Part shown: one piece after another, positions 2,047 to 60,680 of the stretch
Layout of the letters: each line of letters opens with the position of its first letter
How positions within the stretch are numbered: position 1 is the first letter of the stretch
Assembly (NCBI GenBank): GCA_977017575.1
Contig: CDRNVI010000030.1
Span: forward strand, 558,001-622,000
DNA: 64,000 nucleotides
Direction: 5' to 3'
Origin: Paramoeba atlantica
Taxonomy: Eukaryota > Protista > Discosea
Notes under the pieces: generated by a model
The model's database searches: none
The model's input: the letters and a program-made list of their open reading frames with translations, nothing else
Told to the model about the DNA's origin: nothing
Position numbers and translations under genes: made by a program

Positions 2047-2208
2047 TAAGACCATCGTTTTTTGTAAGACCATCGTTTTTTGTAAGACCATCGTTTTTTA
2101 TAAGACCATCGTTTTTTGTAAGACCATCGTTTTTTGTAAGACCATCGTTTTTTGTAAGACCATCGTTTTTTGTAAGACCATCGTTTTTTGTAAGACCATC
2201 GTTTTTTG
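2047..2208 (+). repeat. 9 tandem copies of 18-mer TAAGACCATCGTTTTTTG at the LINE-A1 5' end
   Basis: Nine whole units, one with a G>A change, start immediately after the left TSD. Confidence 0.97.
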
Positions 2209-2226
2209 TAATCTAATTATAAAAAC

Positions 2227-5200
2227 ATGGCGGATGCTTCCGGCACGTGTAAGGGGACAGAGGTTTTTGAAACCCTTACACGGACCAAGCGTGGTCGGGG
2301 GGTCATCTTTCGTTCACCCGAGCGAGAGGGGCCTGCTAAACTCCGCCAGAGGGCGGTGCGGGCGCTCTGTAAGTTTGTCCGCGTTGGGGCTCATCTTCGC
2401 GTCGCGTGGAGACACGACAACTGTTGCGACACTTTGTTTGTTTGGGAGGACGAGGTCGTGTGTGAGGGGCCGGCTTATCTGAAAAGCGTAGGCTGGCATA
2501 CTCAGGGGGGATCCTCGGTAACTCGAGGTGAACCTTTGTCCGGTACATTTCGTGTTCGGTACGTGGCGAGGCCGCACACGACTCTCCCCTTCCCCCCCTT
2601 ACCGAATACAGGTGTCGTGCTCTGCGCGGTGCAGGTGAGTAACCCGGCAAAGGCGAAACGAAGGAGCTCCCGTCACCGCCCTCGGTCACACTGGGCGTCG
2701 CGTGGCACACACGCCCAACGAGATTCGGAGAACCTCAAAGGTTCCGATGTGAAGGAGAACACAACCGTTGCAACGCTTAACGTTACGACGTTAAAACTCG
2801 AGGGGGAAGATGAATTCTCTCTTCGAAGATGCACCCGTTTGAACGAGGTGCTTGCTTTCATGCAGGTAAGGGGGGTTGGTGTCATGTGCCTAAAGGAGGC
2901 CAGGTACAATTTCTCGAAGGAAGGACTTGAGGATGGAATCCTCTACAGGCAGGTTGAAAACCTAGGGGAGAGGTTTCACCTGTATTTGCAGTCGGCCGCC
3001 GCACGCGATTCATATAATGGCATGGCCATAGTGAGCCGGCATGCGTTTCGGAAGGTTTGGATGGTGAGCAACAGGGTGATGGGAGCTGTCTATCCCCTGT
3101 AGGAGGGGACCGGCACTTTGTTCAATGTCTATGCCCCAATACGGGACTCCTCAGAAGCCGTTCATGCGGCATTTCTGGGTGACTTGGACAAGGCGTGTCG
3201 TGAGGTCAAGGCTGAAAGGAAACGAAGACCTTTATTGGTCATGGGGGATTTCAATGCACCGATAACGCTCGTGACGAATCCGAGCATGGATCCCCCAGCG
3301 GTCTCTCAGCTGAAAGGCCTCTTGTGCTCCATTGGCTGTAAGTCAGCACACACCCTCTGCCCGAGCAAGAGGAAATGGACATGTGAGCTGCCGGGCAGGA
3401 GGGCGGAGACAAAGGACCGTCGCAACGTAGGAACAGAGAAGGTGGGGCAGAAGGGGGAAGAAGGAAAGGTGGAAATGGGAAGGAAAGGATCAGAGCCAGA
3501 GGGGACGGATAACAACGGTATGGTGAAGAGGGGAAGGGAAGGAGAGGAAAATGGGGACAAGGCCTGCGAGTACATGCACGTAAAAGGGGAGGTCGGCAAA
3601 AAGGGAGGTAGCAAAAGGCGTGGGGACAACAAGGTGCGGAGACAGCTTGACCACATCATGGTCAGTGAGCGCTTTGCCTGCAGCATTAGGAGGCACAAAG
3701 TACTCAAGGCGCCAGTGCCTACAGTACACTGCGTCGTTATGGCGGATGTGAAAATCAAGTGGCGCTCTAAAGGTACAGGTGGGCAAAGCAAGGTACCCTG
3801 GCCAAGACTTGGAGATGAAGAGAAGAAGGCATCCTTCCAGCAAGCAGTGTGGGAAATGGCGAAGAAAGAGGAAGAGATCACATGGGAATACTTATCGGAA
3901 AATATGGTACACACAGCGCAAAGACTCTCAAAAAAGGACCGAACCCCAAAAACGACCAACGCTCCTACAGGGACAGAAAACACACCACCGGGTACAGAAA
4001 CACCGCGCATCTCAGGGTTTCGCGACTTATTTCTTCAGAGTCGAAAACCGGACCACTTCAAGGAAGTGCTAAAAGAGCACGGAGAAGAAATTGAGGCGCA
4101 GATTGGGCAGGAATGCGCCGAAATTGAAGCAGGTCTGCGGCGAAACCGTTCTAATCCGTGGCGTACGCTACGTAGAATTTGCGGTTTGTACAGGGAGACT
4201 CTTTGCATCGAGACCTCGTCGACAAGGGAAACTCTTAACATTGTTAAAGATTTCTTTGCTCGTATGGGGTCCGATGATCGCGGAGATAAAGATATAAAAT
4301 TTGACAAAGTAGTCAGCCCGAAAGTACCAATCAACGATGAAAGTTTCACTGTAGAAGAGCTCGAGGGCGGCATCAGTAGACTAGCGCGCAACAAGGCACA
4401 TGGAATAGACCAAATTCCGGAGCAGGCACTCAGAATGATCACAGAACATGCTGAGCTGAGAAAATCCTTATTACATATTATAAACGAGGTTCATCGAACA
4501 GGGGTTTCGCCTGCGTCCTGGAAAATTGTCCTTCAGGTGCCTATTCCAAAAAAAGGCGACCTGACACAAATAGCGAATTGGCAGCCAATCTGTCTCGTGA
4601 ACAGTGCGGTTAAATTGATGAATGCAATGATCCTGAAAAGAATCAGACCATCCATCGAGCCGCTCCTTCGCGACAGTCAATTTGGTTTTCGGCCAGAAAG
4701 GTCCACGGCAGGGGCGCAAATCATTTTGAATGATGCAAGAGTTCGTGCGACCAGGGGCAAGAAAGGCATTGCAGTGGCATTCATGGACTTCGCAAAAGCA
4801 TTTCCCTCGGTATCGTTTCATGCCATCCGTGCTGCATTGAATGCCTTTCATGTCGGACCCGCGCTTACTAGGATGGTAATGTCCTTGTACTCGAATTTAA
4901 AAGGAATAGTCCGCACACCATACGGAAATACGGATTCTTTTCCCATTGAAACAGGAATTCTTCAAGGGGACGTGCTTGCTCCTTATCTCTTTGTGCTTGT
5001 GATCGATAGGATTCTCAACAAAGCACTCGATAACAAGCCGCTCGGGATTCTTCTAAGGAGCAGCGGGACGAAAAGCAGGGGAATTCAAGAATTTAGACTA
5101 AAAGACATCGACTACGCAGACGACATAGCACTTTTAGCTTCCACGAAACATGAAATATCGCAAATGATCGAAGCTACGGCAAATGAGGCAAAACCAGCTA

Positions 5201-6813
5201 ATCTGAGGATTGCCGTGGGGAAAACCAAGACTGCGTGGATGGCCTTTGGGAAAGTTCCGGGGGGGACGCGAGAACTTCGAGCAGGATCGCTTGGCAAGAT
5301 TCCTCTTGTGGATTCCTACCGGCATCTTGGTCATCTCCAAGATGCTACAGCATCATCCCCCATCAAGGACAGGCTAAGGATCACATGGGCAGCATTTCGT
5401 AAACTCAGTGGCATTTGGGCTTCTCCTCTGAGTGCTGCCACGAAAATACGCCTGTTTGACTGCTTGATCTACCCTATTTTAACGTTTGGTGCAGCCTGTC
5501 TTTCTCTTTCTAACAAAATGCTTCGAAAAACGGAGGTTGAGGTAAATATGATGAGGAGATTCGCTTGTAACTCAGCAAAGCTTGACGATTTCGGACACTG
5601 CTACCCATTAGAGTCCTTGTATTGTGGTACGCCTCGATTTTCGACCGTGCATCGTGTTGCCCGTGCGAAAATCGTTGGCCACATGCTCAGGCACTCCTCT
5701 ACGTTTCGCGAGCTCGTTCAATGGAATAGCACGGAAAAAACAAGAAATATTTCTCCTAGCGAAGCAAGTTTTAATGATCTAGGGGTCACTCTGGAGCAGG
5801 CGCTTGTTTACTCGCAGGATCGGATACACTGGCAAAAGCTATGCGATGAGCTCAGGCAGGAACTTGAACCACTTCCGATGTATGAGGTATTAAGGTCTCC
5901 AAGGTGGAAAACTAAACACACTCAAGCGGTCAAAAGCAAAAGCTCTTATGAGCTACAATTTGTGGAGGAAGGCTCGGATCCGTTCCACATGAGTGAGGGT
6001 GAGGTTCATATGTATATTGATGGCTCTGTTCGGCAGTTGCGGGGGTCCAAGGAACAAAGATCCGGTGCGGGAATAGTTCTGAGAATGAGTGGAACAGAAG
6101 ACAAATACTATTCCATAGCATTGGATGCTGGCTCAGCTGAGAGAGCTGAGGTTGAATCGCTGAGGGAAGCGCTGGAAAGGATACCTAATGAGGCTCAAAC
6201 AGTTGTCATACACACCGATTCGTTCTATGTATGGAATTTCTTCCATCATACTCGTCTACGACGGCGAATCATTGGGTATAACAATCTACCGAATGGGGGT
6301 ATCCTTGAGAAATTGGATCGGGAAATTCGAACGCTCCAATCGATGGATAAAAGGTGTTACGTGTGCAAAGTGAAATCCCACAACGGGAACATTTACAATG
6401 AGAAGGCAGACACCTTGGCGCTTGCAGGGTCGAGAAAAATAGTCCCAGCCTCAGAAATAAAGAGGAGAAAGACTGCGACAAGTGCCTCAGAAGCTCAAAG
6501 GGTTAGCTCAGCAACCGTCCAAACCATGAATCGTCCTCGGAAACACTGTGGCCAAATACCTAAGCCATTAGGGAAAAGACGGGATTACTTCAAGATTGCA
6601 GAAGGTGATCCTCTCTCCAAAAAGGGTACCTCGCCACCTGTAGGAGTGGATTCTCCTGAAAAGAAAGAGTGTTTGCCTGAGGAATGTGATGCCAAAAATA
6701 CAAAGTTGCATGAAAGACGTACCACGCCCGGTTCAGCGGACAAGGAGCATGAAAGGGCGAATTCACCTGAGAGAAAGACGTCGAAGCGACGACAAAAACG
6801 GATGTGTTCTTAA
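2227..6813 (+). pseudogene. LINE-A1 polyprotein (~1528 codons) with one premature stop at 3100-3102
   Basis: ORFs 2227-3102 and 3118-6813 are in frame; the TAG replaces GAG found in the other copies. Motifs: APE (GDFNA, LDHI), RT (QFGFR, DFAKAF, QGDVLAP, YADD), RNase H (DGS, AE, TDS, HNGN.YNEKAD). Confidence 0.93.
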
Positions 6814-6860
6814 CCGATGCAAATCGGTCTTATAGGATAGGATAGGATAGGATAGGATAG

Positions 6861-7690
6861 CATCACTGCATTCACTGCCTCTACTCTTGCTCTCGCACGT
6901 GCCAATGCAGCTGCACTGCATCACTGCATTCACTGCCTCACGTGGCGGTAATCTTACTCTCGCACGTGCCGCTGCAGCTACACTGCATCACTGCCCCACG
7001 TGGCAGTACTCTCACTCTCTCACGTGCTATTGCAGCTGCACTGCGTCACTGCATTCACTGCCTCTACTCTTACTCTCGTACGTGCCACTGCAGCTACACT
7101 GCATCACTGCCTCACGTGGAAGTACTCTCACTCTCTCACATGCCACTGCAGCTACACTGCATCACTGCAGTCACTGCCTCACATGGCAGTGCACTTACTC
7201 TGGCACGTGCCACTGCAGCTACACTGCATCACTGCAGTCACTGCCTCACATGGCAGTGCACTTACTCTCTCACCTGCCACTGCACCTACACTGCATCACT
7301 GCAGTCACTGCCTCACATGGCAGTGCACTTACTCTGGCACGTGCCACTGCAGCTACACTGCATCACTGCAGTCACTGCCTCACATGGCAGTGCACTTACT
7401 CTCTCACCTGCCACTGCACCTACACTGCATCACTGCAGTCACTGCCTCACATGGCAGTACACTTACTCTCTAACGTGCCACTGCAGCTACACTGCATCAC
7501 TGCAGTCACTGCCTCACACGGCAGTGCACTTACTCTGGCACGTGCCACTGCAGCTACACTGCATCACTGCAGTCACTGCCTCACATGGCAGTGCACTTAC
7601 TCTGGCACGTGCCACTGCAGCTGCACTGCATCACTGTGCAATCACTGCCTCACGTGGCACTGCTCTCACTCTCTCAAGGGCCACTGTAGC
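6861..7690. repeat. ~59-68 bp minisatellite, right part
   Basis: About 67-bp units ...CACTGCAGTCACTGCCTCACATGGCAGTGCACTTACTCT...; inverted counterpart at ~49150-49700. Confidence 0.9.
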
Positions 7691-7868
7691 TACACACTGT
7701 ACCACTCGGACCTGCACATTATTTTTCTCTCTATATAAATACAAAATGTAAACCGTGTTTTTGGTGGCCAGCTGGCCACTTTTTTCAAGAAAAAAATTTG
7801 GAAAAAAAAATCGTTCCGAATTTATTTTTTTCGCGATTTTGAGCATATAATTTTTTTTGTTCAAAAAT

Positions 7869-8190: not shown

Positions 8191-10130
8191 AACACACCTT
8201 TTATAAAGAACACACTTTCTATAAATCCTTTATAAAAAGATGGCAAATGCTTCCGGCGCGGTAAAGGAGACAGAGGCCTTTGAAACCCTTTACCGAACCA
8301 AGCGTGTTTGGGGAGTCATCTTTCGTCCGCCAGTACGGGAGGGACTTGCGAAACTTCGCCAGAGGGCGGTGCGTGCGATTTGTAGGATTGCCAAGGTTGG
8401 GTGCCAAGTGCTTCGGGTTGTGTGGAGATATGTAACTTGTTCGAGACTTTATCTTTGGACGGGGAGAGTTGAAGAGGTGCACGTGCCATTGTTCAGGAAC
8501 GAATCGTGGTCAGGTGTGCTTCGCGTTCGGTACGAGGAGCGTACGAACACAACCCTTCCTTTCCCCCCTATCGTTCTACAGGTGTAGTTCTCTGTTCGGT
8601 TCAAGTCAGTAGCCCTGCTAAAGTGGTCCGAAAGATTGCGCGTCACCGTCCTAAACCTCGGGCATTGCGTGGCATGCATACCCAACGCGAATCGGTGAAC
8701 ATTCAATGTTCCGCTGTGAAGAAGAGTGCTACGGTTGGCACTCTAAACGTGACGATCTTAAAACTTGTGGGGGGTGATAAATTTTCTATTCTTCGATGTT
8801 CACGACTTTGATATAAATATAAATGATAGAAAAGGGGATGGATATTTTGTGCCTTCAGGAAACGAGGTTTAAATTTTCTGAGGACGGCCTCGAGGATGGC
8901 ACACTCTAGAAGCCTAGGGCACTGTTTTCACATTTATCTGCAGTATGCCACAGGTCAAGATTCTTACAACGGAATGGGCATCATTAGTTTACGGGCGCTT
9001 GCGAAGGTGTGGAAAATAAGTGGGAGGGTTATGGGGGCTGAATACCAGCTGGAAGAGTGAAAAGGAAGCTTGGTAAATGTCCATGCTCCTACGCGAGACT
9101 CCTCTGAAGCATTACATGCGGGGTTTCTTCGTGAGGTGGTTCGATCGTGTCAAGGCGGTGAAGCGAAGGCAAAACAGCGCCCTTTACTGGTTGTAGGGGA
9201 CTCTAATGCACCACTTACTTTAACTACGAATAAAATGGGTCCACCACGCGGCTATATCTCAATTAAAAGGGCTGATGAGTTCCACAGGGTGTAAATCTGC
9301 TCATTCACTCTGTCCCAGTCGGAGAAAATGGACGTGCGAGCTACCTTGCAGAGGAAAAGAAGGCTAAAAAGTTAGCAGATCAGTTGAAGGGAAAAACAAA
9401 ACAAGAAAGACGAATGTAGTTATAAACGGGGGCGCAACCTATAATAAGCCGCAAAAACTGCCCACTAATGGCAAGGAAAACCGCGTAAAGAGAGAATTGG
9501 ACAATATTTTAGTGAGTGACCGGTTCTCCTCCAGCGTTTGTGACCACAAGGTTCTTAAGGAACCTATTCCTATGACGCATTGTGTCGTCATGGCGAATGT
9601 AAATATTAAGTAGCGCACTGGGAATCGTAGGGGGGCAGGTCGGGTTACACGGGCTCAACTGAGAGACGAAAAGCGAAGGTTCAAACAAAAAGTTTGGGAG
9701 GCAACTGAGAAAGAATCAATGGTAACGTGGGAAAACCTCTCTGAAACGATGGTAGTACATGTAAATTATATATTTTCAAAGGTGAAAATAGATAAAGTAT
9801 CCGAGTCAGAAGAAGGATCGGTCGAGCGAACCAGTCGATGAAAAAAAACCGTCTATTGGTGTACCAATCCAATCCAATCCAAAAGACCGACATATGTCGG
9901 TTAGAATGTTAAATGTTTTCCCCCCGAACTTATACTCCCTCGCCTTCCAGTTCAGAGTTTTATAGTTCTATTGGTGTACGGGAACTTTTCCTACAAAGCC
10001 GTAAACCACATCACTTCCAGCAGATTGTTGAAACGCATGGTCGAGAAATAGAGGAAGAAATAGCCCTGGAGTGCAATGAAATTGAGGCTGGGCTGCGTTC
10101 TAACAGATCAAATGTCAAATACCAATACGC
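8191..10130 (+). pseudogene. Degenerate 5' half of related family LINE-A' (N-terminal domain + APE + linker)
   Basis: MANASGAVKETEAFETLYRTKR aligns to the LINE-A N-terminus. LQET, VVGDSNAP, LDNILVSDRF and ELFLQSRKPHHF are recognisable through stops and frameshifts. Confidence 0.88.
9865..9966 (-). mobile_element. 102-bp 5'-truncated retro-insertion (3' end of another LINE family)
   Basis: 13-bp TSD TCTATTGGTGTAC (9852-9864, 9967-9979). Minus strand ends ACCGACA-TA-TGTCGGT CTTTT (GGATT)n. Confidence 0.85.
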
Positions 10131-10934: not shown

Positions 10935-11590
10935 TTCTCAGTTGAAAACAACCACCGCGTTTAACGAAGAGCCTAAAAAAGATAATGGAAAAAATGGCAC
11001 CCGCACACTGATAATGCATAATTCACACTGACAATGCATGAAGACAATATTCACACAAAGACTGTTTTCTCTGATAATTTGTGCTTTAATTATTGGGGTT
11101 CGCAAATTTGCTTCCCACTAACGTCAGACGTCTTTATCTTGAAGACGGGTAAACAGGGTCTTGCCTTCCGCCTTTTTTTTTTAATTCTTGAATTCCGCCT
11201 TTTAATTTTTGCTCTCAGAGCACTAAATCCGGCATTTGCGCGTGGGAAATCACTAGTAGGCATGAATGGAAGCCTACCGAACGTATTGGGTAGAGAATGC
11301 GACTCCAACCATACCATTCTTTCGACACAAAAATGCCCCTTTAGGTCCGAAAAATACTTTTTCACCTTTTTTAGTCAAAAATGGGTCATTTTGAGGGGCG
11401 CACCACGGTTGGAAGAAGGGATACCTTGCGAAAACAACTGCGGAGAAAGCTAGTGTAGGTCCCCGGCTACCCTTTCTGCGGTTTTTTTTAGAAAACTAAT
11501 TTTTTCGAAAAAAAATTGCTCGGCCATGACCCCCCCCCCCTGGACCCCCCCCTGGACCCCCCTCGTGGACCCCCGATTTTTTTTCAGTTT
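10935..11590. mobile_element. Internal fragment of the GAGGGAGATAC-ended DNA element family
   Basis: Similar to 59700-60000 (direct) and 60240-60365 (inverted). Confidence 0.6.
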
Positions 11591-11982: not shown

Positions 11983-12737
11983 TTCCAAAAAATCCAAGTC
12001 ATTACGGATTGCTCCGGATGGTCACTGGCAAGCCAGACCCTTCACAGACAGATTTGGAAGTTCCGAGGCCGACGTCCTCTACCAGTTTCCGCTTGTCCAA
12101 GGCGGCACCAACGTGCTGTTGCCAACACGATGCGTCGACGAACTGTACGTCAACACGGCTTACCCAAGAGGCATAAGCCGGGTAAGGGAGCTTGTTCTCT
12201 GAGGGGAATGTCCGGGACGGTCCTCCGAGTACTGGGCCTTGAAGCACATGGTGCTCAGGCGGCGATTTCAAACCCGCTCATCGCAATATTCCTGGCGGCC
12301 TCACTCTAAGAGGCTGGGCTGATAACCGACTAGGCCCAGTACTCGGAGGACCGTCCCGGACCCTCCCCTCAGGGAACCAGCTCCCTTACCCGGCTCACAC
12401 CTCTTGGGTAAGCCGTGTTGGCGTACAATTCGTCGACGCAGCGTGTTGGCAACAGCACGTTGGTGCCGCCTTGGGCAAGCGGAAACTGGTAGAGGACGTC
12501 GGTCTCGGAACTTCCAAATCTGTCTGTGAAGGGTCTGGCTTGCCAGTGACCATCCGGAGCAATCCGGAATGATTTGGATTTTTTTTTTGGAGTACTGGGC
12601 CTAGTCGGTTCTCTACCCAGCCTCTTAGAGTGAGGCCGCCGGGAATATTGCGATGAGCGGGTTTAAACGCTCCGTCTGAGCACCATGTGCTTCAAACCTT
12701 GAATTCTTGCCACTCCGCCACCTCCGCTTGGTGGCGC
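11983..12737 (-). mobile_element. SINE in LINE-C with a second, inverted SINE (12239-12589, +) nested inside
   Basis: Outer TSD TCCGTTTTCTT (11972-11982, 12738-12748); inner TSD GAGTACTGGGCC (12227-12238, 12590-12601). Confidence 0.9.
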
Positions 12738-12763
12738 TCCGTTTTCTTGTCCCGCTTGAACTC

Positions 12764-15700
12764 CATCGTTTTTTGTAATCTAATTATAAAAACATGGCGG
12801 ATGCTTCCGGCACGTGTAAGGGGACAGAGGTTTTTGAAACCCTTACACGGACCAAGCGTGGTCGGGGGGTCATCTTTCGTTCACCCGAGCGAGAGGGGCC
12901 TGCTAAACTCCTCCAGAGAGCGGTGCGGGCGCTCTGTAAGTTTGTCCGCGTTGGGGCTCATCTTCGCGTCGCGTGGAGACACGACAACTGTTGCGACACT
13001 TTGTTTGTTTGGGAGGGCGAGGTCGTGTGTGAGGGGCCGGCTTATCTGAAAAGCGTAGGCTGGCATACTCAGGGGGGATCCTCGGTAACTCGAGGTGAAC
13101 CTTTGTCCGGTACATTTCGTGTTCGGTACGTGGCGAGGCCGCACACGACTCTCCCCTTTCCCCCCTTACTGAATACAGGTGTCGTGCTCTGCGCGGTGCA
13201 GGTGATAACCCGGCAAAGGCGAAACGAAGGAGCTCCCGTCACCGCCCTCGGTCACACTGGGCGTCGCGTGGTACACACGCCCAACGAGATTCGGAGAACC
13301 TCAAAGGTTCCGCTGTGAAGGAGAACACAACCGTTGCAACGCTTAACGTTACGACGTTAAAACTCGAGGGGGAAGATGAATTCTCTCTTCGAAGATGCAC
13401 CCGTTTGAACGAGGTGCTTTCTTTCATGCAGGTAAGGGGGGTTGGTGTCATGTGCCTAAAGGAGGCCAGGTACAATTTCTCGAAGGAAGGACTTGAGGAT
13501 GGAATCCTCTACAGGCAGGTTGAAAACCTAGGGGAGAGGTTTCACCTGTATTTGCAGTCGGCCGCCGCACACGATTCATATAATGGCATGGCCATAGTGA
13601 GCCGGCATGCGTTTCGGAAGGTTTGGATGGTGAGCAACAGGGTGATGGGAGCTGAGTATCCCCTGGAGGAGGGGACCGGCACTTTGTTCAATGTCTATGC
13701 CCCAATACGGGACTCCTCAGAAGCCGTTCATGCGGCATTTCTGGGTGACTTGGACAAGGCGTGTCGTGAGGTCAAGGCTGAACGGAAACGAAGACCTTTA
13801 TTGGTCATGGGGGATTTCAATGCACCGATAACGCTCGTGACGAATCCGAGCATGGATCCCCCAGCGGTCTCTCAGCTGAAAGGCCTCTTGTGCCCCATTG
13901 GCTGTAAGTCAGCACACACCCTCTGCCCGAGCAAGAGGAAATGGACATGTGAGCTGCCGGGCAGGAGGGCGGAGACAAAGGACCGTCGCAACGTAGGAAC
14001 AGAGAAGGTGGGGCAGAAGGGGGAAGAAGGAAAGGTGGAAATGGGAAGGAAAGGATCAGAGCCAGAGGGGACGGATAACAACGGTATGGTGAAGAGGGGA
14101 AGGGAAGGAGAGGAAAATGGGGACAAGGCCTGCGAGTACATGCACGTAAAAGGGGAGGTCGGCAAAAAGGGAGGTAGCAAAAGGCGTGGGGACAACAAGG
14201 TGCGGAGACAGCTTGACCACATCATGGTCAGTGAGCGCTTTGCCTCCAGCATTAGGAGGCACAAAGTACTCAAGGCGCCAGTGCCTACAGTACACTGCGT
14301 CGTTATGGCGGATGTGAAAATCAAGTGGCGCTCTAAAGGTACAGGTGGGCAAAGCAAGGTACCCTGGCCAAGACTTGGAGATGAAGAGAAGAAGGCATCC
14401 TTCCAGCAAGCAGTGTGGGAAATGGCGAAGAAAGAGGAAGAGATCACATGGGAATACTTATCGGAAAATATGGTACACACAGCGCAAAGACTCTCAAAAA
14501 AGGACCGAACCCCAAAAACGACCAACGCTCCTACAGGGACAGAAAACACACCACCGGGTACAGAAACACCGCGCATCTCAGGGTTTCGCGACTTATTTCT
14601 TCAGAGTCGAAAACCGGACCACTTCAAGGAAGTGCTAAAAGAGCACGGAGAAGAAATTGAGGCGCAGATTGGGCAGGAATGCGCCGAAATTGAAGCAGGT
14701 CTGCGGCGAAACCGTTCTAATCCGTGGCGTACGCTACGTAGAATTTGCGGTTTGTACAGGGAGACTCTTTGCATCGAGACCTCGTCGACAAGGGAAACTC
14801 TTAACATTGTTAAAGATTTCTTTGCTCGTATGGGGTCCGATGATCGCGGAGATAAAGATATAAAATTTGACAAAGTAGTCAGCCCGAAAGTACCAATCAA
14901 CGATGAAAGTTTCACTGTAGAAGAGCTCGAGGGCGGCATCAGTAGACTAGCGCGCAACAAGGCACATGGAATAGACCAAATTCCGGAGCAGGCACTCAGA
15001 ATGATCACAGAACATGCTGAGCTGAGAAAATCCTTATTACATATTATAAACGAGGTTCATCGAACAGGGGTTTCGCCTGCGTCCTGGAAATTTGTCCTTC
15101 AGGTGCCTATTCCAAAAAAAGGCGACCTGACACAAATAGCGAATTGGCGGCCAATCTGTCTCGTGAACAGTGCGGTTAAATTGATGAATGCAATGATCCT
15201 GAAAAGAATCAGACCATCCATCGAGCCGCTCCTTCGCGACAGTCAATTTGGTTTTCGGCCAGAAAGGTCCACGGCAGGGGCGCAAATCATTTTGAATGAT
15301 GCAAGAGTTCGTGCGACCAGGGGCAAGAAAGGCATTGCAGTGGCATTCATGGACTTCGCAAAAGCATTTCCCTCGGTATCGTTTCATGCCATCCGTGCTG
15401 CATTGAATGCCTTTCATGTCGGACCCGCGCTTACTAGGATGGTAATGTCCTTGTACTCGAATTTAAAAGGAATAGTCCGCACACCATACGGAAATACGGA
15501 TTCTTTTCCCATTGAAACAGGAATTCTTCAAGGGGACGTGCTTGCTCCTTATCTCTTTGTGCTTGTAATCGATAGGATTCTCAACAAAGCACTCGATAAC
15601 AAGCCGCTCGGGATTCTTCTAAGGAGCAGCGGGACGAAAAGCAGGGGAATTCAAGAATTTAGACTAAAAGACATCGACTACGCAGACGACATAGCACTTT

Positions 15701-17128
15701 TAGCTTCCACGAAACATGAAATATCGCAAATGATCGAAGCTACGGCAAATGAGGCAAAACCAGCTAATCTGAGGATTGCCGTGGGGAAAACCAAGACTGC
15801 GTGGATGGCCTTTGGGAAAGTTCCGGGGGGGACGCGAGAACTTCGAGCAGGATCGCTTGGCAAGATTCCTCTTGTGGATTCCTACCGGCATCTTGGTCAT
15901 CTCCAAGATGCTACAGCATCATCCCCCATCAAGGACAGGCTAAGGATCACATGGGCAGCATTTCGTAAACTCAGTGGCATTTGGGCTTCTCCTCTGAGTG
16001 CTGCCACGAAAATACGCCTGTTTGACTGCTTGATCTACCCTATTTTAACGTTTGGTGCAGCCTGTCTTTCTCTTTCTAACAAAATGCTTCGAAAAACGGA
16101 GGTTGAGGTAAATATGATGAGGAGATTCGCTTGTAACTCAGCAAAGCTTGACGATTTCGGACACTGCTACCCATTAGAGTCCTTGTATTGTGGTACGCCT
16201 CGATTTTCGACCGTGCATCGTGTTGCCCGTGCAAAAATCGTTGGCCACATGCTCAGGCACTCCTCTACGTTTCGCGAGCTCGTTCAATGGAATAGCACGG
16301 AAAAAACAAGAAATATTTCTCCTAGCGAAGCAAGTTTTAATGATCTAGGGGTCACTCTGGAGCAGGCGCTTGTTTACTCGCAGGATCGGATACACTGGCA
16401 AAAGCTATGCGATGAGCTCAGGCAGAAACTTGAACCACTTGCGATGTATGAGGTATTAAGGTCTCCAAGGTGGAAAACTAAACACACTCAAGCGGTCAAA
16501 AGCAAAAGCTCTTATGAGCTACAATTTGTGGAGGAAGGCTCGGATCCGTTCCCCATGAGTGAGGGTGAGGTTCATATGTATATTGATGGCTCTGTTCGGC
16601 AGTTGCGGGGGTCCAAGGAACAAAGATCCGGTGCGGGAATAGTTCTGAGAATGAGTGGAACAGAAGACAAATACTATTCCATAGCATTGGATGCTGGCTC
16701 AGCTGAGAGAGCTGAGGTTGAATCGCTGAGGGAAGCGCTGGAAAGGATACCTAATGAGGCTCAAACAGTTGTCATACACACCGATTCGTTCTATGTATGG
16801 AATTTCTTCCATCATACTCGTCTACGACGGCGAATCATTGGGTATAACAATCTACCGAATGGGGGTATCCTTGAGAAATTGGATCGGGAAATTCGAACGC
16901 TCCAATCGATGGATAAAAGGTGTTACGTGTGCAAAGTGAAATCCCACAACGGGAACATTTACAATGAGAAGGCAGACACCTTGGCGCTTGCAGGGTCGAG
17001 AAAAATAGTCCCAGCCTCAGAAATAAAGAGGAAGAAATAAATAAAGAGGAGAAAGACTGCGACAAGTGCCTCAGAAGCTCAAAGGGTTAGCTCAGAAACC
17101 GTTCAAACCATGAATCGTCCTCGGAAAC
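12764..17128 (+). mobile_element. LINE-A2: frameshifted at ~13205, 3'-truncated duplicate of LINE-A3
   Basis: Same left flank (TTGAACTC in LINE-C) and same stop-creating duplication near the RNase H end as A3. ORFs 12794-13318 and 13315-17040. Confidence 0.93.
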
Positions 17129-17145
17129 AGAGGTTCCGTTTTCTT

Positions 17146-17915
17146 TTCCAAAAAATCCAAGTCATTCCGGATTGCTCCGGATGGTCACTGGCAAGCCAGA
17201 CCCTTCACAGACAGATTTGGAAGTTCCGAGGCCGACGTCCTCTACCAGTTTCCGCTTGACCAAGGCGGCACCAACGTGCTGTTGCCAACACGCTGCGTCG
17301 ACGAACTGTACGTCAACACGGCTTACCCAAGAGGTGTAAGCCGGGTAAGGGAGCTGGTTCCCTGAGGGGAGGGTCCGGGACGGTCCTCCGAGTACTGGGC
17401 CTAGTCGGTTATCAGCCCAGCCTCTTAGAGTGAGGCCGCCGGGGATATTGCGATGAGCGGGTTTGAACTCGCCGTCTGAGCACCATGTGCTTCAAACTTT
17501 GAGTTCTTGCCACTCCGCCACTCCTCCACTCTCCGCCACTCCTCCACTCTCCGCCACTCCTCCACTCTCCGCCCCTTGCCACTCCGCCCGTCGAGTTCAA
17601 ACCCGTTCATCGCAATATTCCCGGCGGCCTCACTCTAAGAGGCTGGGTTGATAACCGACTAGGCCCAGTACTCGGAGGACCGTCCCGGACCCTCCCCTCA
17701 GGGAACCAGATCCCTTACCCGGCTTACACCTCTTGGGTAAGCCGTGTTGACGTACAGTTCGTCGACGCAGCGTGTTGGCAACAGCACGTTGGTGCCGCCT
17801 TGGTCAAGCGGAAACTGGTAGAGGACGTCGGCCTCGGAACTTCCGAATCTGTCTGTGAAGGGTCTGGCTTGCCAGTGACCATCCGGAGCAATCCGGAATG
17901 ATTTGGATTGGATTT
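17146..17915. mobile_element. Head-to-head SINE pair (17146-17589 minus; 17590-17915 plus, 5'-truncated)
   Basis: Both match the SINE consensus. The minus copy has 3x18-nt repeats at its 5' end; the plus copy ends in the hairpin + GGATTGGATT. Confidence 0.88.
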
Positions 17916-18453: not shown

Positions 18454-19990
18454 AAGATTCTGCAGCGCATTCTTCCTTCCATTGATCTGATACTACGCGA
18501 CAGCCAATTTGGATTCCGCCCCGATCGTTCTGTTACAGAGGCGCAGATTCTTCTTAACGAGACGGAGATTAGGGCGTCCAGAGGTGAGTCCGGTGTTGCC
18601 CTTGCGTTTCTTGATTTTGTAAAAGCATTTCCGTCAGTTTCCTTTTAATCGTGGTGGATCGTATTCTGTATCGAGCTCTGGATGACAAACCGTTCGGCAT
18701 TCTTCTTCAGAGCAAAGGAATTCAGGAGTCGAGGCTCCGTGATACGCGGATGATATTGCTCTTCTTTCCACGACAAAAGGCGAACTTTCGCAGATGATAG
18801 AGGAGATATCTGAAGAGTCTAAGCAGGCAAATCTCAGAATTGCGGTACGACCGACTCCAAATCCAAATCCAAATCGCCGACTAAAACTGCTTGGATGGCA
18901 TTTGGCAAGATTCCTGGAACAACTCGTAATCTTAGAGCAGGGGTAAGATTCCTCTTGTCCATTCATATAGATATCTGGGAAATCTTCAAGATTCAGGTGT
19001 TTCTTCGCCATTGAAGGATCGTTTAAGACTAACCTGGGCGGCATTTCGCAAGCTGCGGGGTATTTGGGATTCACCTCTTAGCGTATCCACCAAATTCCGG
19101 CTGTTTGACTGCCTTGTTTACCCTATCATGACGTTTGGGGCGGCATCACTTTCAGTTTCCAACAAACTGCTTCGTCAAACAGAGGTTGATCTTAATATGA
19201 TGCGAAGATTCTGTTGCAATTGCGCGAAACTCGATGAGTTTGGACACTGTTATCCACTTGAATCGCTTTATCGCGGCACACCTCGGTTTTCTACCGTGCA
19301 TCAGGTTAGTCGTGCAAAAATTGTGGGCCACATTCTGAGGCATTCGACTGCCTTTCGAGACCTCATACAGTGGAAATCCAGGGAGCAAAGAAGCTCTTGT
19401 TTACTCTAAGGATCGTGATCACTGGAGAAAACTGTGTGAGAATTTAAAAGCCACACTGGAGAGAATAAGTTCCCCCAGATGGAAAAGTCGCCATACCCAA
19501 GCCTTACAACAAGACACGCTTTATGATCCACAATTCGTCGAAGAAGGCTCAGACCTCTTTCTCGTCAAAGATTCGGACTTTGCGCGTGACCAACGAAAAC
19601 AGAGCTGGTGCAGGACTTGTCGTGCGACGAAAATGGGTGAATGATCAAAATTTTTCCGAAGAGGAAGAAGACAACGAGCGCTAATACCTCTGAAACCATA
19701 AACTCGCTACAAACACGGAAGATTATTCGCCCAAGAACTAATGTTGCAAAAAATTCTTCTAAACGCAACGAAACACATACTGCAAGTGATCTTGTGCCTA
19801 AAAATGGCAGCTCCCGTTCTGTAGAGCCCAGAGAGGAATCGTCTGCTGAAATTTCCACTTCATCCCTGAGTAATCAAGATATCGGTAAAGAAAACAGTTG
19901 TCAGGGTTCAAGAGAATTTGACAAAGTTGGGAACATTAAGAAAAAGGAGTCCCCTAAGAGAATGAAGCCGTCACGAGTTTTGAAACAGTA
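18454..19990 (+). pseudogene. Degenerate RT/RNase H 3' half of a LINE-A-related family (LINE-B)
   Basis: RDSQFGFRPDRS, FLDFVKAFPSV, YADDIALLS, KDRLRLTWAAFRKL, CYPLESLY..PRFSTVH, with deletions and stops. Confidence 0.88.
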
Positions 19991-20557
19991 GTAAAGGGGG
20001 GGGGCGGATATATATTACGCTTGCAGATATATATTACTTTTAAAATATTACTTGAAATTACTTTTTCACCTTTTATATTCAAAAATGGGCCATTTTCGCG
20101 GGCATACCACGGCAGAGGCGTTCGGACTTCGCACCCCCAACTGCCTGTGAAGGGCCCTCCCTTGAAGGGGGGTGGCAACTTCCCAAAGGAGGTACAACCT
20201 CCTGAGGGAGCCAGCGGCAAGCCGGGGCTTCCCGGCACCCTTCATTCACTCAGAAACGCATTTGGCGCCCTGCGATCGTCACCTCCGTTTGTCAGGTAAG
20301 AAAATGTTGATTTCACGTGGATCAAAGCATCGAAACTGCTCTAGAGCACCCAAAGTAGTAAGCGCCCAAAGTAGTAAGCGAGTATTCCCGGTGTCGTCAG
20401 GGGCGTTCAATCGCCCACAAGAACGTCTCGCCACGCTGCCTTATTGCACTGTCGACCGAAATGTTGGCCTTCTGGGTGATCTACCCATGGGAAATGTTTC
20501 GATAGAGTGAATTATTAGTATGCCATGTTCCTAAAGAAATATGGTGGAACAAGTTAA

Positions 20558-20745
20558 CCCAGGATAAAGTGGACGAGGGAGATACTAAAGTCACATTTTG
20601 CAAACTACCACAAAACTGGAACGGCATCCCCCGGTTTGTTAAGCATTCTGATGTGACCCAAGAATTTAACGTGAGATACTGTTCCAGTTTTGTGGTAGTT
20701 TGCCAAATGTGCCTTCAGTATCTCCCTCGTCCACTTTATCCTGGG
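20558..20745. mobile_element. 188-bp foldback/MITE-like element with arms CCCAGGATAAAGTGGACGAGGGAGATACT
   Basis: Perfect ~29-bp inverted termini plus internal imperfect symmetry. Copies at 26325-26512 and 51110-51297. Confidence 0.8.
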
Positions 20746-21297
20746 TTGCACAGCCATCGAAACATGCTCCCTAGGACCTCTTACAGATTCCCACGCGAGG
20801 AAGTCGTCGTCGCCGCGGCAAAAAGACAGAAGGCTGTCTTTTTGCCTTGCGCCTCCTCCTTCCTCTAAGGCCTTGCGTGTTACGCACTTCCAGGTAAATT
20901 TTGGACTTTGTAGGTGCATTACCATGGCAGACTGAAGAAATATCGAATGAAATCAAAGCGCATACAGGTGTATCAGGCCCCAAACTCTCAAAAAACGGTC
21001 TAGGAGTTGATTTGGGAAAAATATATTTTTTGACTTTCACCCATAATTTTTCAGTTTTTCAAAATTTCAAAAATTGCTATGATCACCCTGGTGGGGAGGG
21101 GGGGGGGGCAGGGGGTACCCATCGGAATTGTTGAAAAACTAGTGATCTTGTCACTCAATTCGATTCATACGTCTTTGTAAACATTTCTTTCGAAAACTCA
21201 CCTGAAACGATACCGGGCACGAAATCGGGCCACAAATCGGGCCACAAATCGGGCACGGCGAATTAATCCACGGCAGCAAGGGAGTAGTATCTCCCTC
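20558..21297 (-). mobile_element. Short Helentron/Helitron2-like non-autonomous element
   Basis: Minus-strand left end TT|GAGGGAG-ATACTA-CTCCCTT (hairpin) at 21297; right end GTATCTCCCTC-N14-GGG|TT at 20558. Confidence 0.5.
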
Positions 21298-21552
21298 AAT
21301 AAACTTATTCCTTCACAAAAAAGGATAAAGAGGCTTGATCCCTATAAAATTACTTGCCACGAGGTAATGCCCCCAGCGACAGCGGCTCTACGCCCTATCG
21401 AAGGGCCCTCCCGTCGGGCCCTTCAAAAATAAAGGACACAGAAGCTTGAGGGCGGTAGGGGCAAATATTTGACGAAAATCTGTTTTTTTTGAACTTGTTC
21501 ACAATCAATTTTCAAACGTTTTTAGGTCATTTTCGTATTCATACGGCCATTT

Positions 21553-24428
21553 CCAATCCAATCCAAATCCAATCCAGAATACCGACAAAGTCGGCTAAAA
21601 CACTTAGCACTTTCACACTAAACATTTCCATCTCTATCATCAGCACTAGAGCTCATCAACACTAGAGCACACAAACCGCATAAAGTAATGGAATATAAAA
21701 CTTCCTCAAGGCATATTCTAGCACACGTACGGAGATACACAACAAGCACTCACACTTACTTTGGTGTCCACCTTCCACCGCCAGTTCTCGTAACTTTCTG
21801 GCGAATAACAACTTTTTCCTCTGCCTCACGTTTAGACGCGGATGAGGCTTTCACTGCACGCTGACTTTTTGCGTTTCGTTTTGCAAACTGCTGAGCAGTG
21901 GTTTGCGAATTTGAGGACTTTCTTCTCTTTACGTCAGGTTCGCTTACTTTCTTTCTAGATGCAGACAATGCGAGCTAGTCTGCTGCCTCGTTCCAAGGAT
22001 TTCCCGAGTGAGATTTAACTTTCACATATTTGTACCCCTTGACCCTTCAACGCGCGTAATTTATGGTCCATTTGATCCATCAAGTCTCCATTTGCAATTC
22101 CGTTGTAGCCTACAACGCGAAAACGTGATCTTAAACTGTGAAAATATTGTCAAACGTAACAAGAATCAGTATGAAAAACGCAAGAAAGTGATACTTCTGG
22201 AAATTTCGAAATAGCCTCACGAAATGCTAATAATTCGGCCCTCTCACTTGTTCCCACCTCCAACGGAATAGAATAGTAATCAGGGTCACCCCTGATTTTC
22301 AAGAAAACAACACCAGCACCGCTACGCACCGTTTGTGTTCCGCGCAAAACTCTCACTGAACCACCCGGAATGTATCAACATCCGAAATGTATAGATTTAA
22401 GCTTGGGGAATGGCACACTAGATTCTTCAATAAATTGTAGCTCTTTATAAATCTTGTTCTTGATAGCTGTGGCTTTCAATGCTTTCCATTTTCTTGTAGT
22501 AGCACGCTCGTAGTCAACCGCTGGCTCAAGTGAAAGTTTTAGCTTTTCGGTGAGACGAAACCGATGCCATAAACCAATGCCTCTTCTAAAGTTATACCCA
22601 AGTCTGAAATACATGCTTCGCTTGGAGAAGGACGTCTCGAATTAGATTTATTTCTCCATTGCACCAGGTCTCGATAGTTCGGAGAATGTCTCAGCATGTG
22701 TCCGGCAAGTTTGGCTCTCTGAACTTTGTGAATAGTGGAAAATCGTGATGTATTTACTTAGAGAGAGTCTGTAGGATAACAAAAACCATACTCGCCCAAT
22801 TTGTTGCACTGAGATGCAATTCTTCTCATCGTATTAATTTCGTCATCAATCGAACGCAACATTTTTTGAGAAATGTGCAATGCGCCTGAACCGAAGTTCA
22901 GAATAGGGTATATAAGCACGTCGTATAGTCTGAGTTTAATATGAGAGCTTAAAGATGAAATCCATATTCCTCGCATGCTGGCAAATGAGGAACAAGCAAG
23001 TTTCAAACGATCTTTGATTGTAGATGATGTTTCATTGTCTTGAAGATGCCCTAGATGTCGATACGAATCTACTCTAGGTGCCGTTTCCAGTTCTTTTGTC
23101 TGGAGATTCTTATTTGAGCCGGCAACCTTACCGAAAGAGATAAGGTTTGTGTATGCGTTTTTTGTAACACCTACAGCCATCTTTAGGTTCGCCAAGGAAG
23201 CATCCTGTGACGTTTCGTCAATCATTTCCTGGAGACCTTCCTTTGTATCACTGAACAATGCAATGTCATCTGCAAGATCAATATCAGAAATTCGTTTTTC
23301 CTGTAGGTTCCGTTTTCTTTTCCAAAAAATCCAAGTCATTCCGGATTGCTCCGGATGGTCACTGGCAAGCCAGACCCTTCACAGACAGATTTGGAAGTTC
23401 CGAGGCCGACGTCCTCTACCAGTTTCCGCTTGTCCAAGGCGGCACCAACGTGCTGTTGCCAACACGATGCGTCGACGAACTGTACGTCAACACGGCTTAC
23501 CCAAGAGGTGTAAGCCGGGTAAGGGAGCTTGTTCCCTGAGGGGAATGTCCGGGACGGTCCTCCGAGTACTGGGCCTAGTCGGTTCTCCACCCAGCCTCTT
23601 AGAGTGAGGCCGCCGGGAATATTGCGATGAGCGGGTTTAAACTCGCCGTCTGAGCACCATGTGCTTCAAACCTTGAATTCTTGCCACTCCGCCACCTCCT
23701 CTTGGTGGCGCTCCGTTTTCTTGTCCCGCTTGAACTCAAAAGTAATCCGCGATTTTCCAGGTCCAGCGACTTATTAAGAATGCGATCCATAACCATCACG
23801 AAAAGGTAAGGGGCCAACAAATCCCCCTGAAGTATTCCTGTAGTTATCGGAGAAGAATCTGTGATACCAAAGGGTGTGCGGACTACTCCTTTCAGATTTG
23901 AGTAAAATGACATGATCATTTCGGATAGACGAACTCCCGCGTGATATGCTTTCAGACTCGCTTTTATCGCAGCGAAAGATACAGATGGGAATGCTTTTGC
24001 GAAATCAATGAACGCTACACAAACACCTTTATTCGGAAATGCCTTGGACTTTATTTCATTCATGATTGTTTGCGCACCAGCGGTAGATCTATTTTGACGA
24101 AAACCGTATTGATTGTCTCGAAGAAGTGGTTCAACGCTGGGGCGGATGCGAGTAAGAATCATAAAATTAATCAGCTTGACTATACTGTTTACAAGGCAAA
24201 TAGGGTGCCAGTTTGAAAGCTGCGATAAATCCCCTTTCTTTGGAATAGGTATTTGAAGAATGACTTTCCATGATGCTTCGGTAACGCCTGTTTCATGCAC
24301 TTCATTGATTAGCTCCAGCAAAAAATCTCTAAAATCCTGATGTGTCGAAATTGCTTGTAAGGCCTCCATGTGAATACCGTCTCCCTCTGGGGCTCTATTC
24401 TTCCCGAAGTGCGAAAGCGAATAAAAGA
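21553..24428 (-). pseudogene. LINE-C 3' half (RT + RNase H + 3' UTR), degenerate, SINE-interrupted
   Basis: NQYGFRQNRST, IDFAKAFPSV, QGDLLAPYLF, LADDIALF, SERAELLAFREA..HTDS. 3' hairpin GCCGAC-TTT-GTCGGT (21581-21595) + (GGATT)n. Confidence 0.9.
23320..23711 (-). mobile_element. SINE in the LINE-C RT domain
   Basis: TSD TCCGTTTTCTT (23309-23319, 23712-23722). 5' extra bases GCGCCACC are complementary to the SINE head. Confidence 0.92.
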
Positions 24429-24798
24429 GCGAAATGCCGCCCAGGTTAGTCTTAAACGATCCTTCAATGGCGAAGAAACACCTGAATCTTGAAGATTTCC
24501 CAGAGGAGGCTTGAGACACATCCTACACGATGAAACGGGGTGGACGCCCGTCCTGGTAGCTACGGTTGGGTAGCCGTGCTCGGGCCGCAAGGCGTCGAGT
24601 GCCGTCTGGGAAGGGGGTAGAAAGACAATGAAGGTCGGTGACCTGAGACTCTACCCTAACGGTTGGCGCTGCAGAGCCCTCCGTGTCTTCTTCTTCTTCT
24701 TCTTCTTCTTCTTCTATAGATATCTGGGAAATCTTCAAGATTCAGGTGTTTCTTCGCCATTGAAGGATCGTTTAAGACTAACCTGGGCGGCATTTCGC
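24429..24798. repeat. 76-bp inverted repeat of LINE-B sequence around a 218-bp spacer ending in (TTC)n
   Basis: 24429-24504 is the reverse complement of 24723-24798. The whole structure recurs at ~47270-47635. Confidence 0.88.
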
Positions 24799-27700: not shown

Positions 27701-28344
27701 TCAGGTTCGCTTACTTTCTTTCTAGATGCAGACAATGCGAGCTAGTCTGCTGCCTCGTTCCAAGGATTTCCCGAGTGAGATTTAACTTTCACATATTTGT
27801 ACCCCTTGACCCTTCAACGCGCGTAATTTATGGTCCATTTGATCCATCAAGTCTCCATTTGCAATTCCGTTGTAGCCTACAACGCGAAAACGTGATCTTA
27901 AACTGTGAAAATATTGTCAAACGTAACAAGAATCAGTATGAAAAACGCAAGAAAGTGATACTTCTGGAAATTTCGAAATAGCCTCACGAAATGCTAATAA
28001 TTCGGCCCTCTCACTTGTTCCCACCTCCAACGGAATAGAATAGTAATCAGGGTCACCCCTGATTTTCAAGAAAACAACACCAGCACCGCTACGCACCGTT
28101 AGTGTTCCGCGCAAAACTCTCACTGAACCACCCGGAATGTATCAACATCCGAAATGTATAGATTTAAGCTTGGGGAATGGCACACTAGATTCTTCAATAA
28201 ATTGTAGCTCTTTATAAATCTTGTTCTTGATAGCTGTGGCTTTCAATGCTTTCCATTTTTTTGTAGTAGCACGCTCGTAGTCAACCGCTGGCTCAAGTGA
28301 AAGTTTTAGCTTTTCGGTGAGACGAAACCGATGCCATAAACCAA
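24718..28344. repeat. Segmental unit copy 2, left part (LINE-B fragment, foldback, LINE-C 3' end)
   Basis: Near-identical to 18962-22577 at offset ~5767, with small indels. Confidence 0.9.
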
Positions 28345-40300: not shown

Positions 40301-40714
40301 ACCATCGTTTTTTGTAAGACCATCGTTTTTTGTAAGACCATCGTTTTTTGTAAGACCATCGTTTTTTGTAAGACCATCGTTTTTTGTAAGACCATCGTTT
40401 TTTGTAAGACCATCGTTTTTTGTAAGACCATCGTTTTTTGTAAGACCATCGTTTTTTGTAAGACCATCGTTTTTTGTAAGACCATCGTTTTTTGTAAGAC
40501 CATCGTTTTTGCTGCCTCTTCTAAAGTTATACCCAAGTCTGAAATACATGCTTCGCTTGGAGAAGGACGTCTCGAATTAGATTTATTTCTCCATTGCACC
40601 AGCTCTCGATAGTTCGGAGAATGTCTCAGCATGTGTCCGGCAAGTTTGGCTCTCTGAACTTTGTGAATAGTGGAAAATCGTGATGTATTTACTTAGAGAG
40701 AGTCTGTAGGATAA
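28345..40714. repeat. 12.4-kb higher-order array: 21x 202-bp LINE-C segment alternating with 20 blocks of (TAAGACCATCGTTTTTTG)n
   Basis: Every period = 207+18n with n = 15,31,7,34,8,25,9,28,49,10,38,30,17,10,22,25,15,21,31,21 (sum 446). LINE-C continues collinearly on both sides. Confidence 0.97.
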
Positions 40715-41254
40715 CAAAAACCATACTCGTCCAATTTGTTGCACTGAGATGCAATTCTTCTCATCGTATTAATTTCGTCATCAATCGAACACAACATTTT
40801 TTGAGAAATGTGCAATGCGCCTGAACCGAAGTTCAGAATAGGGTATATAAGCACGTCGTATAGTCTGAGTTTAATATGAGAGCTTAAAGATGAAATCCAT
40901 ATTCCTCGCATGCTGGCAAATGAGGTACAAGCAAGTTTCAAACGATCTTTGTTTGTAGATGATGTTTCATTGTCTTGAAGATGCCCTAGATGTCGATACG
41001 AATCTACTCTAGGTGCCGTTTCCAGTTCTTTTGTCTGGAGATTCTTATTTGAGCCGGCAACCTTACCGAAAGAGATAAGGTTTGTGTATGCGTTTTTTGT
41101 AACACCTACAGCTATCTTTAGGTTCGCCAAGGAAGCATCCTGTGACGTTTCGTCAATCATTTCCTGGAGACCTTCCTTTGTATCACTGAACAATGCAATG
41201 TCATCTGCAAGATCAATATCAGAAATTCGTTTTTCCTGTAGGTTCCGTTTTCTT
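40715..41254 (-). pseudogene. LINE-C RT segment continuing upstream of the array
   Basis: ORF 40693-41274 is nearly identical to 22758-23339. Confidence 0.9.
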
Positions 41255-41870: not shown

Positions 41871-41896
41871 TCCGTTTTCTTGTCCCGCTTGAACTC

Positions 41897-60643: not shown

Positions 60644-60680
60644 ATCCGGAGCAATCCGGAATGATTTGGATTTTTTTTTC
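60644..60680 (+). mobile_element. Extreme 5'-truncated SINE (3' hairpin + tail only)
   Basis: ATCCGGAGCAATCCGGAATGATTTGGATTTTTTTTT with no upstream SINE body; no clear TSD. Confidence 0.7.

Follow-up and report, generated by a model that had tools for sequence, protein, structure and literature searches.

Tandem arrays of a short 5'-terminal unit in an APE-RT-RNase H LINE family and in a 12-kb composite satellite

Why does a LINE begin with a tandem run of its own first nucleotides, and is such a run added anew, in a telomerase-like manner, when the element inserts, as a preliminary description of this DNA had proposed, or is it inherited with the element? The question is raised by LINE-A1, which lies in the 64,000-nt stretch of DNA analysed here (the window). 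The 5' array of LINE-A1 consists of nine in-register copies of TAAGACCATCGTTTTTTG on the plus strand (2047-2208), with a single mismatch in copy 3. TRF reported 9.2 copies at 98%, and none of 100 shuffles matched this run. The array is located inside 10-bp target-site duplications (TSDs) of CATCACTGCA, the left one at 2037-2046 and the right one at 6861-6870, so that the earlier claim of an element opening with nine 18-mer copies within its TSD was borne out. The whole element (2047-6860, plus strand) comprises the array, an 18-nt innermost leader, the ORF and a 3' UTR with a hairpin, followed by an (ATAGG)n tail at 6832-6860. The ATG of the 4.6-kb ORF stands directly after the leader behind the array, and the gene (2227-6813, plus strand), which encodes APE, RT and RNase H, is broken by one in-frame stop. 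The 18-mer unit equals the first 17 nt of the element itself plus a G, in agreement, for LINE-A, with the proposal that the repeated unit is the element's own 5' terminus. The target of LINE-A1 is a 59/67-bp satellite, which is uninterrupted at 6908-6940. Because the array lies between the target duplications and the satellite is intact at that position, the repeats belong to the inserted DNA. Note that this satellite (1645-2045 and 6886-7695) is rich in CACGTG and CACTGCAT, and that it is also present as an inverted block at 48.6-49.7 kb (48652-49689). At the other end of the element, GGTCTTA in the LINE-A 3' end (6810-6860, with the hairpin CCGATGCAAATCGG, TCTT and the tail) is the reverse complement of TAAGACC, the core of the 5' unit (2047-2064). 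GGTCTT also precedes the tail in one relative (the L009/L010 3' ends), and no covariation was seen.

LINE-A1 was compared with other copies of the family in a sample of about 230 kb in all, which comprised the window and fetched parts of ten related contigs. Seven independent LINE-A insertions carry about 0.6 to 18 units (0.6, 0.6, 3, 5, 9, 16 and 18), array lengths being assembly-dependent. The 18-mer run joins the leader at the same base in the six insertions besides LINE-A1, which are at unrelated sites. Five of the seven begin inside ACCATCG, the seven bases after TAAG (at ACCATCG, CCATCG, CATCG, ATCG or CG). Specifically, the insertion with 18 units and a part-unit (L002) begins with ACCATCG, that with about 16 units (L003) with CATCG, that with three units (L006) with ATCG, and one with 0.6 unit (L004) with (AT)CG. 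LINE-A3 (41897-46572, plus strand), whose gene has one in-frame stop, carries 0.67 unit and begins with CATCGTTTTTTG (CATCG). The two remaining insertions are LINE-A1, with nine units beginning TAAGACC, and L008, with five units beginning TTTG TAAGACC. As for the TSDs, ATTGGGTGAC flanks L003 and AGATTATAT flanks L004, and none was evident for L002 and L006. The TSD of LINE-A3 is TGAACTC (41890-41896 and 46573-46579), and the corresponding empty site is found at about 23701-23730 in a paralogous unit. Another copy in the window, LINE-A2 (12764-17129, plus strand), has a 12-nt part-unit at its start, one frameshift and one in-frame stop, and its 3' end is cut off by a SINE; its 5' flank duplicates that of LINE-A3, of which LINE-A2 is a segmental copy. 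In older copies the arrays are short and have mutated to about the same degree as the bodies. About 500 unit-to-unit junctions were perfect, with no added bases, and no cap-derived extra G was seen before the outermost unit in the copies with readable ends.

Arrays of this kind are also carried by diverged relatives. In the L012 lineage, whose protein is 77% identical to that of LINE-A, 87 copies of the 18-mer ACCACTTTTTGTTTTAAG stand immediately 5' of the ATG, and about two units of 17 nt were found in the L009/L010 lineage (~35% identical at the N-terminus). The 5' leader of LINE-A' in the window (8191-8239, plus strand; 50% identical to LINE-A) consists of one unit with AAG at its end, an innermost copy with AAT in that position and a short A/T leader, after which the ATG follows. 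Two imperfect 18-nt units had been described at the start of LINE-A', and these were recovered as 1.9 copies at 88% (8191-8225), a match that is weak alone; the repeats are homologous to the LINE-A unit and its innermost copy. In one further relative just the innermost copy is present. Units end AAG and innermost copies AAT in four lineages, and the rest of the unit is identical to the lineage's own innermost copy in three of the four, and at 15 of 17 positions in LINE-A'. LINE-D (RT 53% identical, with a trace of RNase H) starts with 3.3 copies of an unrelated 20-21-mer that has no T tract. The LINE array periods are 17, 18, 18, 18 and 20-21 nt, a small and partly non-independent sample. Given that homologous arrays occur in lineages only 35-77% identical, the array is an inherited family trait and is not made fresh at each insertion. 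The comparison of lineages indicates that the LINE-A-family array is old, inherited and continually homogenised, and that the unit and the innermost copy evolve together.

The largest accumulation of the 18-mer, which the preliminary description had overlooked, is found in a composite satellite (28345-40714, plus strand), in which a 202-bp spacer, present in 21 copies, alternates with 20 runs of 6-49 18-mer units. The LINE-A 18-mer occurs 454 times in the window, and 445 of these occurrences lie at 28552-40512. The spacer is a piece of the neighbouring repeated unit B, and a single uninterrupted spacer is present in the paralogous unit B1 (22578-22779, minus strand). Its minus strand encodes LINE-B residues that match amino acids 1126-1192 of LINE-A. 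All 20 left junctions read GGATAA-GTTTT-TAAGACC, and all 20 right junctions have CGTTTTTGC directly followed by TGCCTC, with the shortened T run and the extra base included, one of them carrying a point change. Two spacer variants (T or C in one column) alternate along the satellite, and in its first half the runs after one variant are long and those after the other short. Furthermore, a duplicated block of three units is marked by two further spacer variants and one unit variant, and the run lengths within it have since changed from 22 to 21, from 25 to 31 and from 15 to 21. Twenty separate RT events were rejected as the origin of the array because the junctions share their oddities and the markers show block duplication. 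The shared junctions and the markers trace the 12-kb array to a single spacer-array-spacer seed, which was enlarged by unequal exchange or replication slippage, and the altered run lengths indicate that the length of long 18-mer runs in the chromosome shifts rapidly. As for the seed itself, replication may have switched template into a LINE-A array and then returned; alternatively, LINE-A may have inserted with a long duplication and a complex junction at its 5' end, and its body may later have been lost between the spacers. An exact look-up of the unit B1 ORF for other copies of the spacer locus found none on record. LINE-A3, with its 0.67 unit, sits 1.4 kb downstream of the 12-kb array on the same strand (40513-46572), and both LINE-A3 and the array are missing from unit B1 (18949-24700). 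The commonest unit variant in 28552-40512 is a change from CATCG to CATTG (CpG to TpG), which recurs as singletons in several runs.

The LINE-A ORF encodes one protein of about 1530 amino acids with Pfam matches to Exo_endo_phos, RVT_1 and RNase_H; a zinc finger was not found by Pfam on the ORF, which is weak evidence. The RNase H domain aligns to cellular RNase HI and keeps the DGS, RAE, TDS and H..N..AD motifs, so the domain looks catalytically complete. At least a trace of RNase H was detected in every member of the family examined. LINE-A copies that are 96-99% identical were found in the ENA long-read assembly ERZ24900291, and three of them have an intact ORF of 1529-1530 amino acids. An exact scan of JGI metagenome contigs for two 18-mer units gave no match, nor did a protein search with an ORF read through the 18-mer array, a type of repeat that such searches filter out, and a protein search with the LINE-A ORF returned none of the named ingi or L1Tc proteins. 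Concerning the host, the DSS-1 gene that lies beside one LINE-A copy has its best match in Perkinsela (48%), followed by Bodo and the trypanosomatids. On this ranking of matches the host falls among the kinetoplastids, probably within the Prokinetoplastina.

Two SINE copies had been described as carrying 18-nt 5' repeats of their own, and both were recovered. A plus-strand SINE (54610-55119) has a head of 6.2 copies of TGGGCGGAGGTGGCGGAG (54611-54721) and a 31-nt duplication (54702-54763), and is enclosed by the TSD AACATCTCGT (54600-54609 and 55120-55129). A minus-strand SINE (about 17147-17589) has a head of 3.4 copies of an 18-mer (17513-17573), which differs from TGGGCGGAGGTGGCGGAG in its first 8 nt, with an outer 15-nt re-copy of its own start; its duplication is unreadable because two SINEs abut head to head. 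The SINE repeat unit is the SINE's own first 18 nt. The reiterations in the SINEs measure 9, 15, 18, 18 and 31 nt in this small sample, and not 18 nt alone. SINE copies with clear duplications have heads of differing length and extra bases (GA, TGT or T). The head contains TGGCGGAGTGG, which we take to fit the A-box pattern; ARAGORN found no tRNA, and a search of the window with Rfam at the gathering threshold found no ribozyme, tRNA or SINE family. The SINE ends in a hairpin followed by (GATTTG)n or T runs. This resembles the end of LINE-B, a family member that is 64% identical in RT and carries RNase H-like sequence, where a hairpin is followed by (TGGATT)n; the LINE-A tail is (ATAGG)n. LINE-A was rejected as the SINE's partner on this tail type, and the SINE is probably not its passenger. 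The proposal that the LINE-A protein adds repeats to a SINE that it mobilises was not upheld for the same reason, the tail matching LINE-B-type relatives. Some minor features of the SINEs were also observed. In some copies CGCCACC stands just 5' of the head sequence GGTGGCG, forming a short palindrome (23701-23760 and 12700-12763). Two neighbouring SINE copies in L003 (14960-14990 and 15440-15470) have a common upstream stretch of 29 nt, with 1.7 and 2.7 head units, respectively. The last 31 nt of the SINE (the hairpin TCCGGAGCAATCCGGA, ATGATTTGGATTT and a T run) also terminate a different sequence at 60644-60680.

The 5' junction of one LINE-A insertion, L003, is irregular. The target segment CATTGGGTGACA is present three times upstream of the element and once more after the tail. 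The upstream segments are interleaved with CATCGTTTTTTG and CATCGTTT, which are 8-12 nt of the LINE 5' end, and with extra bases, a one-base insertion and small errors. The switches occur at CA and CGTT microhomologies, and the target-plus-end periods are 21-30 nt. This arrangement fits a polymerase that alternated between the target overhang and the RNA 5' end.

How, then, is the 18-mer run to be explained? One could suppose that it is a host satellite lying next to LINE-A1 or captured by it, and not a part of the element, since the 12-kb array of the same 18-mer holds no LINE-A body. However, the run falls within the duplication of LINE-A1, six further insertions, each at an unrelated site, have it attached to the leader at the very same base, and diverged relatives carry diverged versions in the same place; these observations contradict an independent satellite, which we regard as scarcely credible. 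We consider it slightly likelier than even that the run is the 5' monomer array of an APE-RT-RNase H LINE family in a kinetoplastid related to Perkinsela, the units of which would hold a start site and a leader or promoter. The array lies inside the target-site duplications and is therefore carried in the RNA and copied into new insertions. Each unit would hold a start site, and the units downstream of it may act as an internal promoter or leader, like Pr77 or the monomers of mouse L1. The unit number of a new insertion would then reflect the position of the transcript start in the progenitor, and could later be reshaped at the DNA level. We prefer such a monomer array because the array is inherited and homogenised, the start phase is fixed, the unit junctions are clean and copy number is unstable at the DNA level; as far as sequence data can tell, an inherited, unstable, promoter-like array is favoured over new telomerase-like copying. 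Several points stand against this explanation. LINE-A1 and L008 begin at TAAG and not at ACC. An array that loses units at transcription needs a route of growth, and growth at the DNA level was seen in the satellite, not in an active element. In addition, periods of 17-21 nt in unrelated units (the LINE-A lineage, LINE-D and the SINE) hint at a length ruler that a promoter does not predict, and some irregularity of copying at the RNA 5' end during insertion is suggested by the 5' junction of L003 and by the heterogeneity of SINE heads within duplications. A variant in which trans-splicing takes the place of the promoter appears unlikely. Here, each unit, with a T-rich tract and then AG, would be an acceptor, and the array a battery of acceptors through which the ORF is expressed from polycistronic transcripts. 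The host is a kinetoplastid, the unit reads CGTTTTTTGTAAG followed by ACC with the T tract and AAG kept in four lineages, and the 5' ends of the copies lie 0-5 nt past the AG of a unit, all as expected of acceptors. On the other hand, no insertion has a common leader 5' of the array, although one would be expected in copies of trans-spliced RNA, the flanks being unrelated and the duplications directly abutting the units, and the 20-21-mer of LINE-D lacks a T tract.

The remaining explanations place the origin of the repeats in reverse transcription. At the RNA 5' end, the enzyme may slip back or switch template and re-copy the terminal stretch, with no fixed ruler; the switch could be to the same RNA, to another RNA or to the target overhang, so that insertions can gain units, chromosomal changes being secondary. 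We regard such reiteration as less likely than not but as a plausible contribution, and it deserves more weight than the other alternatives to the monomer array. It would account for the pieces of target and LINE 5' end interleaved in L003, for SINE heads that vary in length and carry extra bases inside their own duplications, for SINEs in which 15, 18 or 31 nt of the start have been copied again, and for a unit that, in four lineages, consists of the terminal 17 nt and a G. Set against it are the clean unit junctions (about 500), the inheritance of arrays across diverged lineages, the lack of an extra G 5' of the outermost unit in copies with readable ends, the short arrays of older copies that are mutated about like their bodies, and the growth of the satellite by block duplication. 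Repeat addition at insertion, as originally proposed, is thus upheld in so far as the L003 junction resembles repeated template switching, but not for the long arrays, whose junctions are perfect and without jump scars and whose copy number changes at the DNA level. Similarly, short arrays of 17-21 nt are indeed found repeatedly, in several relatives with RNase H as well as in a SINE, as a general 5' reiteration would have it, but the LINE arrays are inherited. The preliminary description had gone further and supposed an RNase H cut some 18 nt behind the polymerase, with the resulting 18-nt 5' RNA remnant re-copied by end-to-end jumps, so that any mobilised RNA gains repeats. An 18-nt spacing is known for retroviral enzymes and not for LINE RNase H. 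The periods cluster at 17-21 nt in mutually unrelated units (17-18 nt in the LINE-A lineage, 20-21 nt in LINE-D and 18 nt in two SINE units), the catalytic motifs of RNase H are kept, and every family member examined has at least a trace of the domain. However, the arrays of the LINE-A lineage share ancestry and so amount to a single event, other lengths also occur (9, 15 and 31 nt among the SINE re-copies, and 21-30 nt for the target-plus-end periods), and the SINE tail matches LINE-B-type ends and not the (ATAGG)n of LINE-A. Such a ruler also predicts equal units and some scars, whereas variants in blocks and clean junctions were seen. We therefore consider this ruler improbable, even more so than trans-splicing. 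A broader proposal, which we advance as speculation and rate about as low as the trans-splicing variant, is that RNase H-bearing LINEs and the SINE of their relatives re-copy the last 17-21 nt of their RNA template, with a length set by the enzyme (e.g., the distance from polymerase to RNase H), and that copying to and fro with the target overhang could seed satellites such as the 12-kb array.

Returning to the monomer array as the preferred explanation, we compared the LINE-A family with known systems. The 5' UTRs of mouse and rat L1 contain monomer arrays of ~200-bp units, in which copy number is variable and the outermost unit is usually partial; the monomers evolve in concert and get replaced between lineages. 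Likewise, the LINE-A units are tandem at the extreme 5' end, inside the TSD and upstream of the ORF, their copy number varies by insertion, and the outermost unit is partial with a preferred phase. Unlike the ~200-bp monomers of L1, the units here are 17-21 nt long and are present in up to 87 copies, the LINE-A unit copies the first 17 nt of the element itself, transcription in the kinetoplastid host is polycistronic, and the promoter role is putative. R2-type RTs perform end-to-end template jumping and leave variable 5' junctions. The L003 junction, with its reiterated pieces of target and 5' end and its extra bases, is similar to such jumps, but LINE-A differs from R2 in having an APE endonuclease and in not being site-specific, only one such junction was seen, and the long arrays are free of scars. 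Retroviral RNase H cuts 13-19 nt from an RNA 5' end, which is comparable to the length scale of 17-21 nt found here together with an RNase H domain; the LINE-A domain, in contrast, resembles cellular RNase HI, and a coupling to the polymerase at that distance is hypothetical. The 12-kb array resembles higher-order-repeat satellites formed by unequal exchange in its identical junctions, alternating two-variant period, block duplications and drifting run lengths. It is unlike them in having a chimeric unit, which combines a run of LINE 5' monomers with an antisense segment of 202 bp from the coding region of a related LINE. In the trypanosomatid L1Tc/ingi clade, the 5'-terminal Pr77 is an internal promoter with a downstream element, is common to LINEs and their non-autonomous partners, and contains the ribozyme L1TcRz (PMC3383444, PMC4748587, PMC4035085). 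Like ingi and L1Tc, LINE-A resides in a kinetoplastid and has APE, RT and RNase H in one protein in the same domain order. It differs from ingi and L1Tc (PMC3383444, PMC4748587) in that the 77-nt hallmark is absent and a leader of ~30 nt and a tandem array are present. In the first 600 nt of LINE-A (2150-2750), Rfam at E values up to 10 gave no match to an HDV-like or any other ribozyme, nor to a tRNA or SINE family. Moreover, the SINE here is a candidate tRNA-like element, unlike the non-autonomous partners of ingi/L1Tc, which are deletion derivatives. Searches of a limited literature turned up no account of short 5' arrays in LINEs of kinetoplastids.

The LINE family described here, probably from the little-known Prokinetoplastina, has a 5' minisatellite (17-21-nt units, up to 87 of them) where trypanosomatid LINEs have Pr77. 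It offers a concrete example of a retrotransposon 5' monomer seeding a large satellite, and indicates that chromosomal processes can alter the copy number at LINE 5' ends very rapidly. Should periods prove to cluster at 17-21 nt throughout the genome, in units unrelated to one another, this would suggest that the insertion machinery contains a length ruler, a novelty for non-LTR elements.

Finally, we describe the surroundings of these elements. Tandem segmental repeats fill the region, with a period of 5.75 kb in the window and of 10.7 kb and 3.4 kb in related contigs. The segmental repeats (18949-28546, 40513-41415 and 46572-48653 in the window, and those in L001 and L008) consist of nested LINE and SINE pieces. 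The related contigs bear the suffix 'c' and are apparently circular assemblies. In L012, a 19-mer repeated 5.9 times (1080-1192) adjoins an antisense SINE fragment. In addition, short arrays of (CCCCCCCCTGGA)n or (GGGGGGTCCAG)n are present at many loci (11533-11574 and 60243-60279 in the window, and L001, L002, L006 and L012), where they apparently lie within another repeated element.
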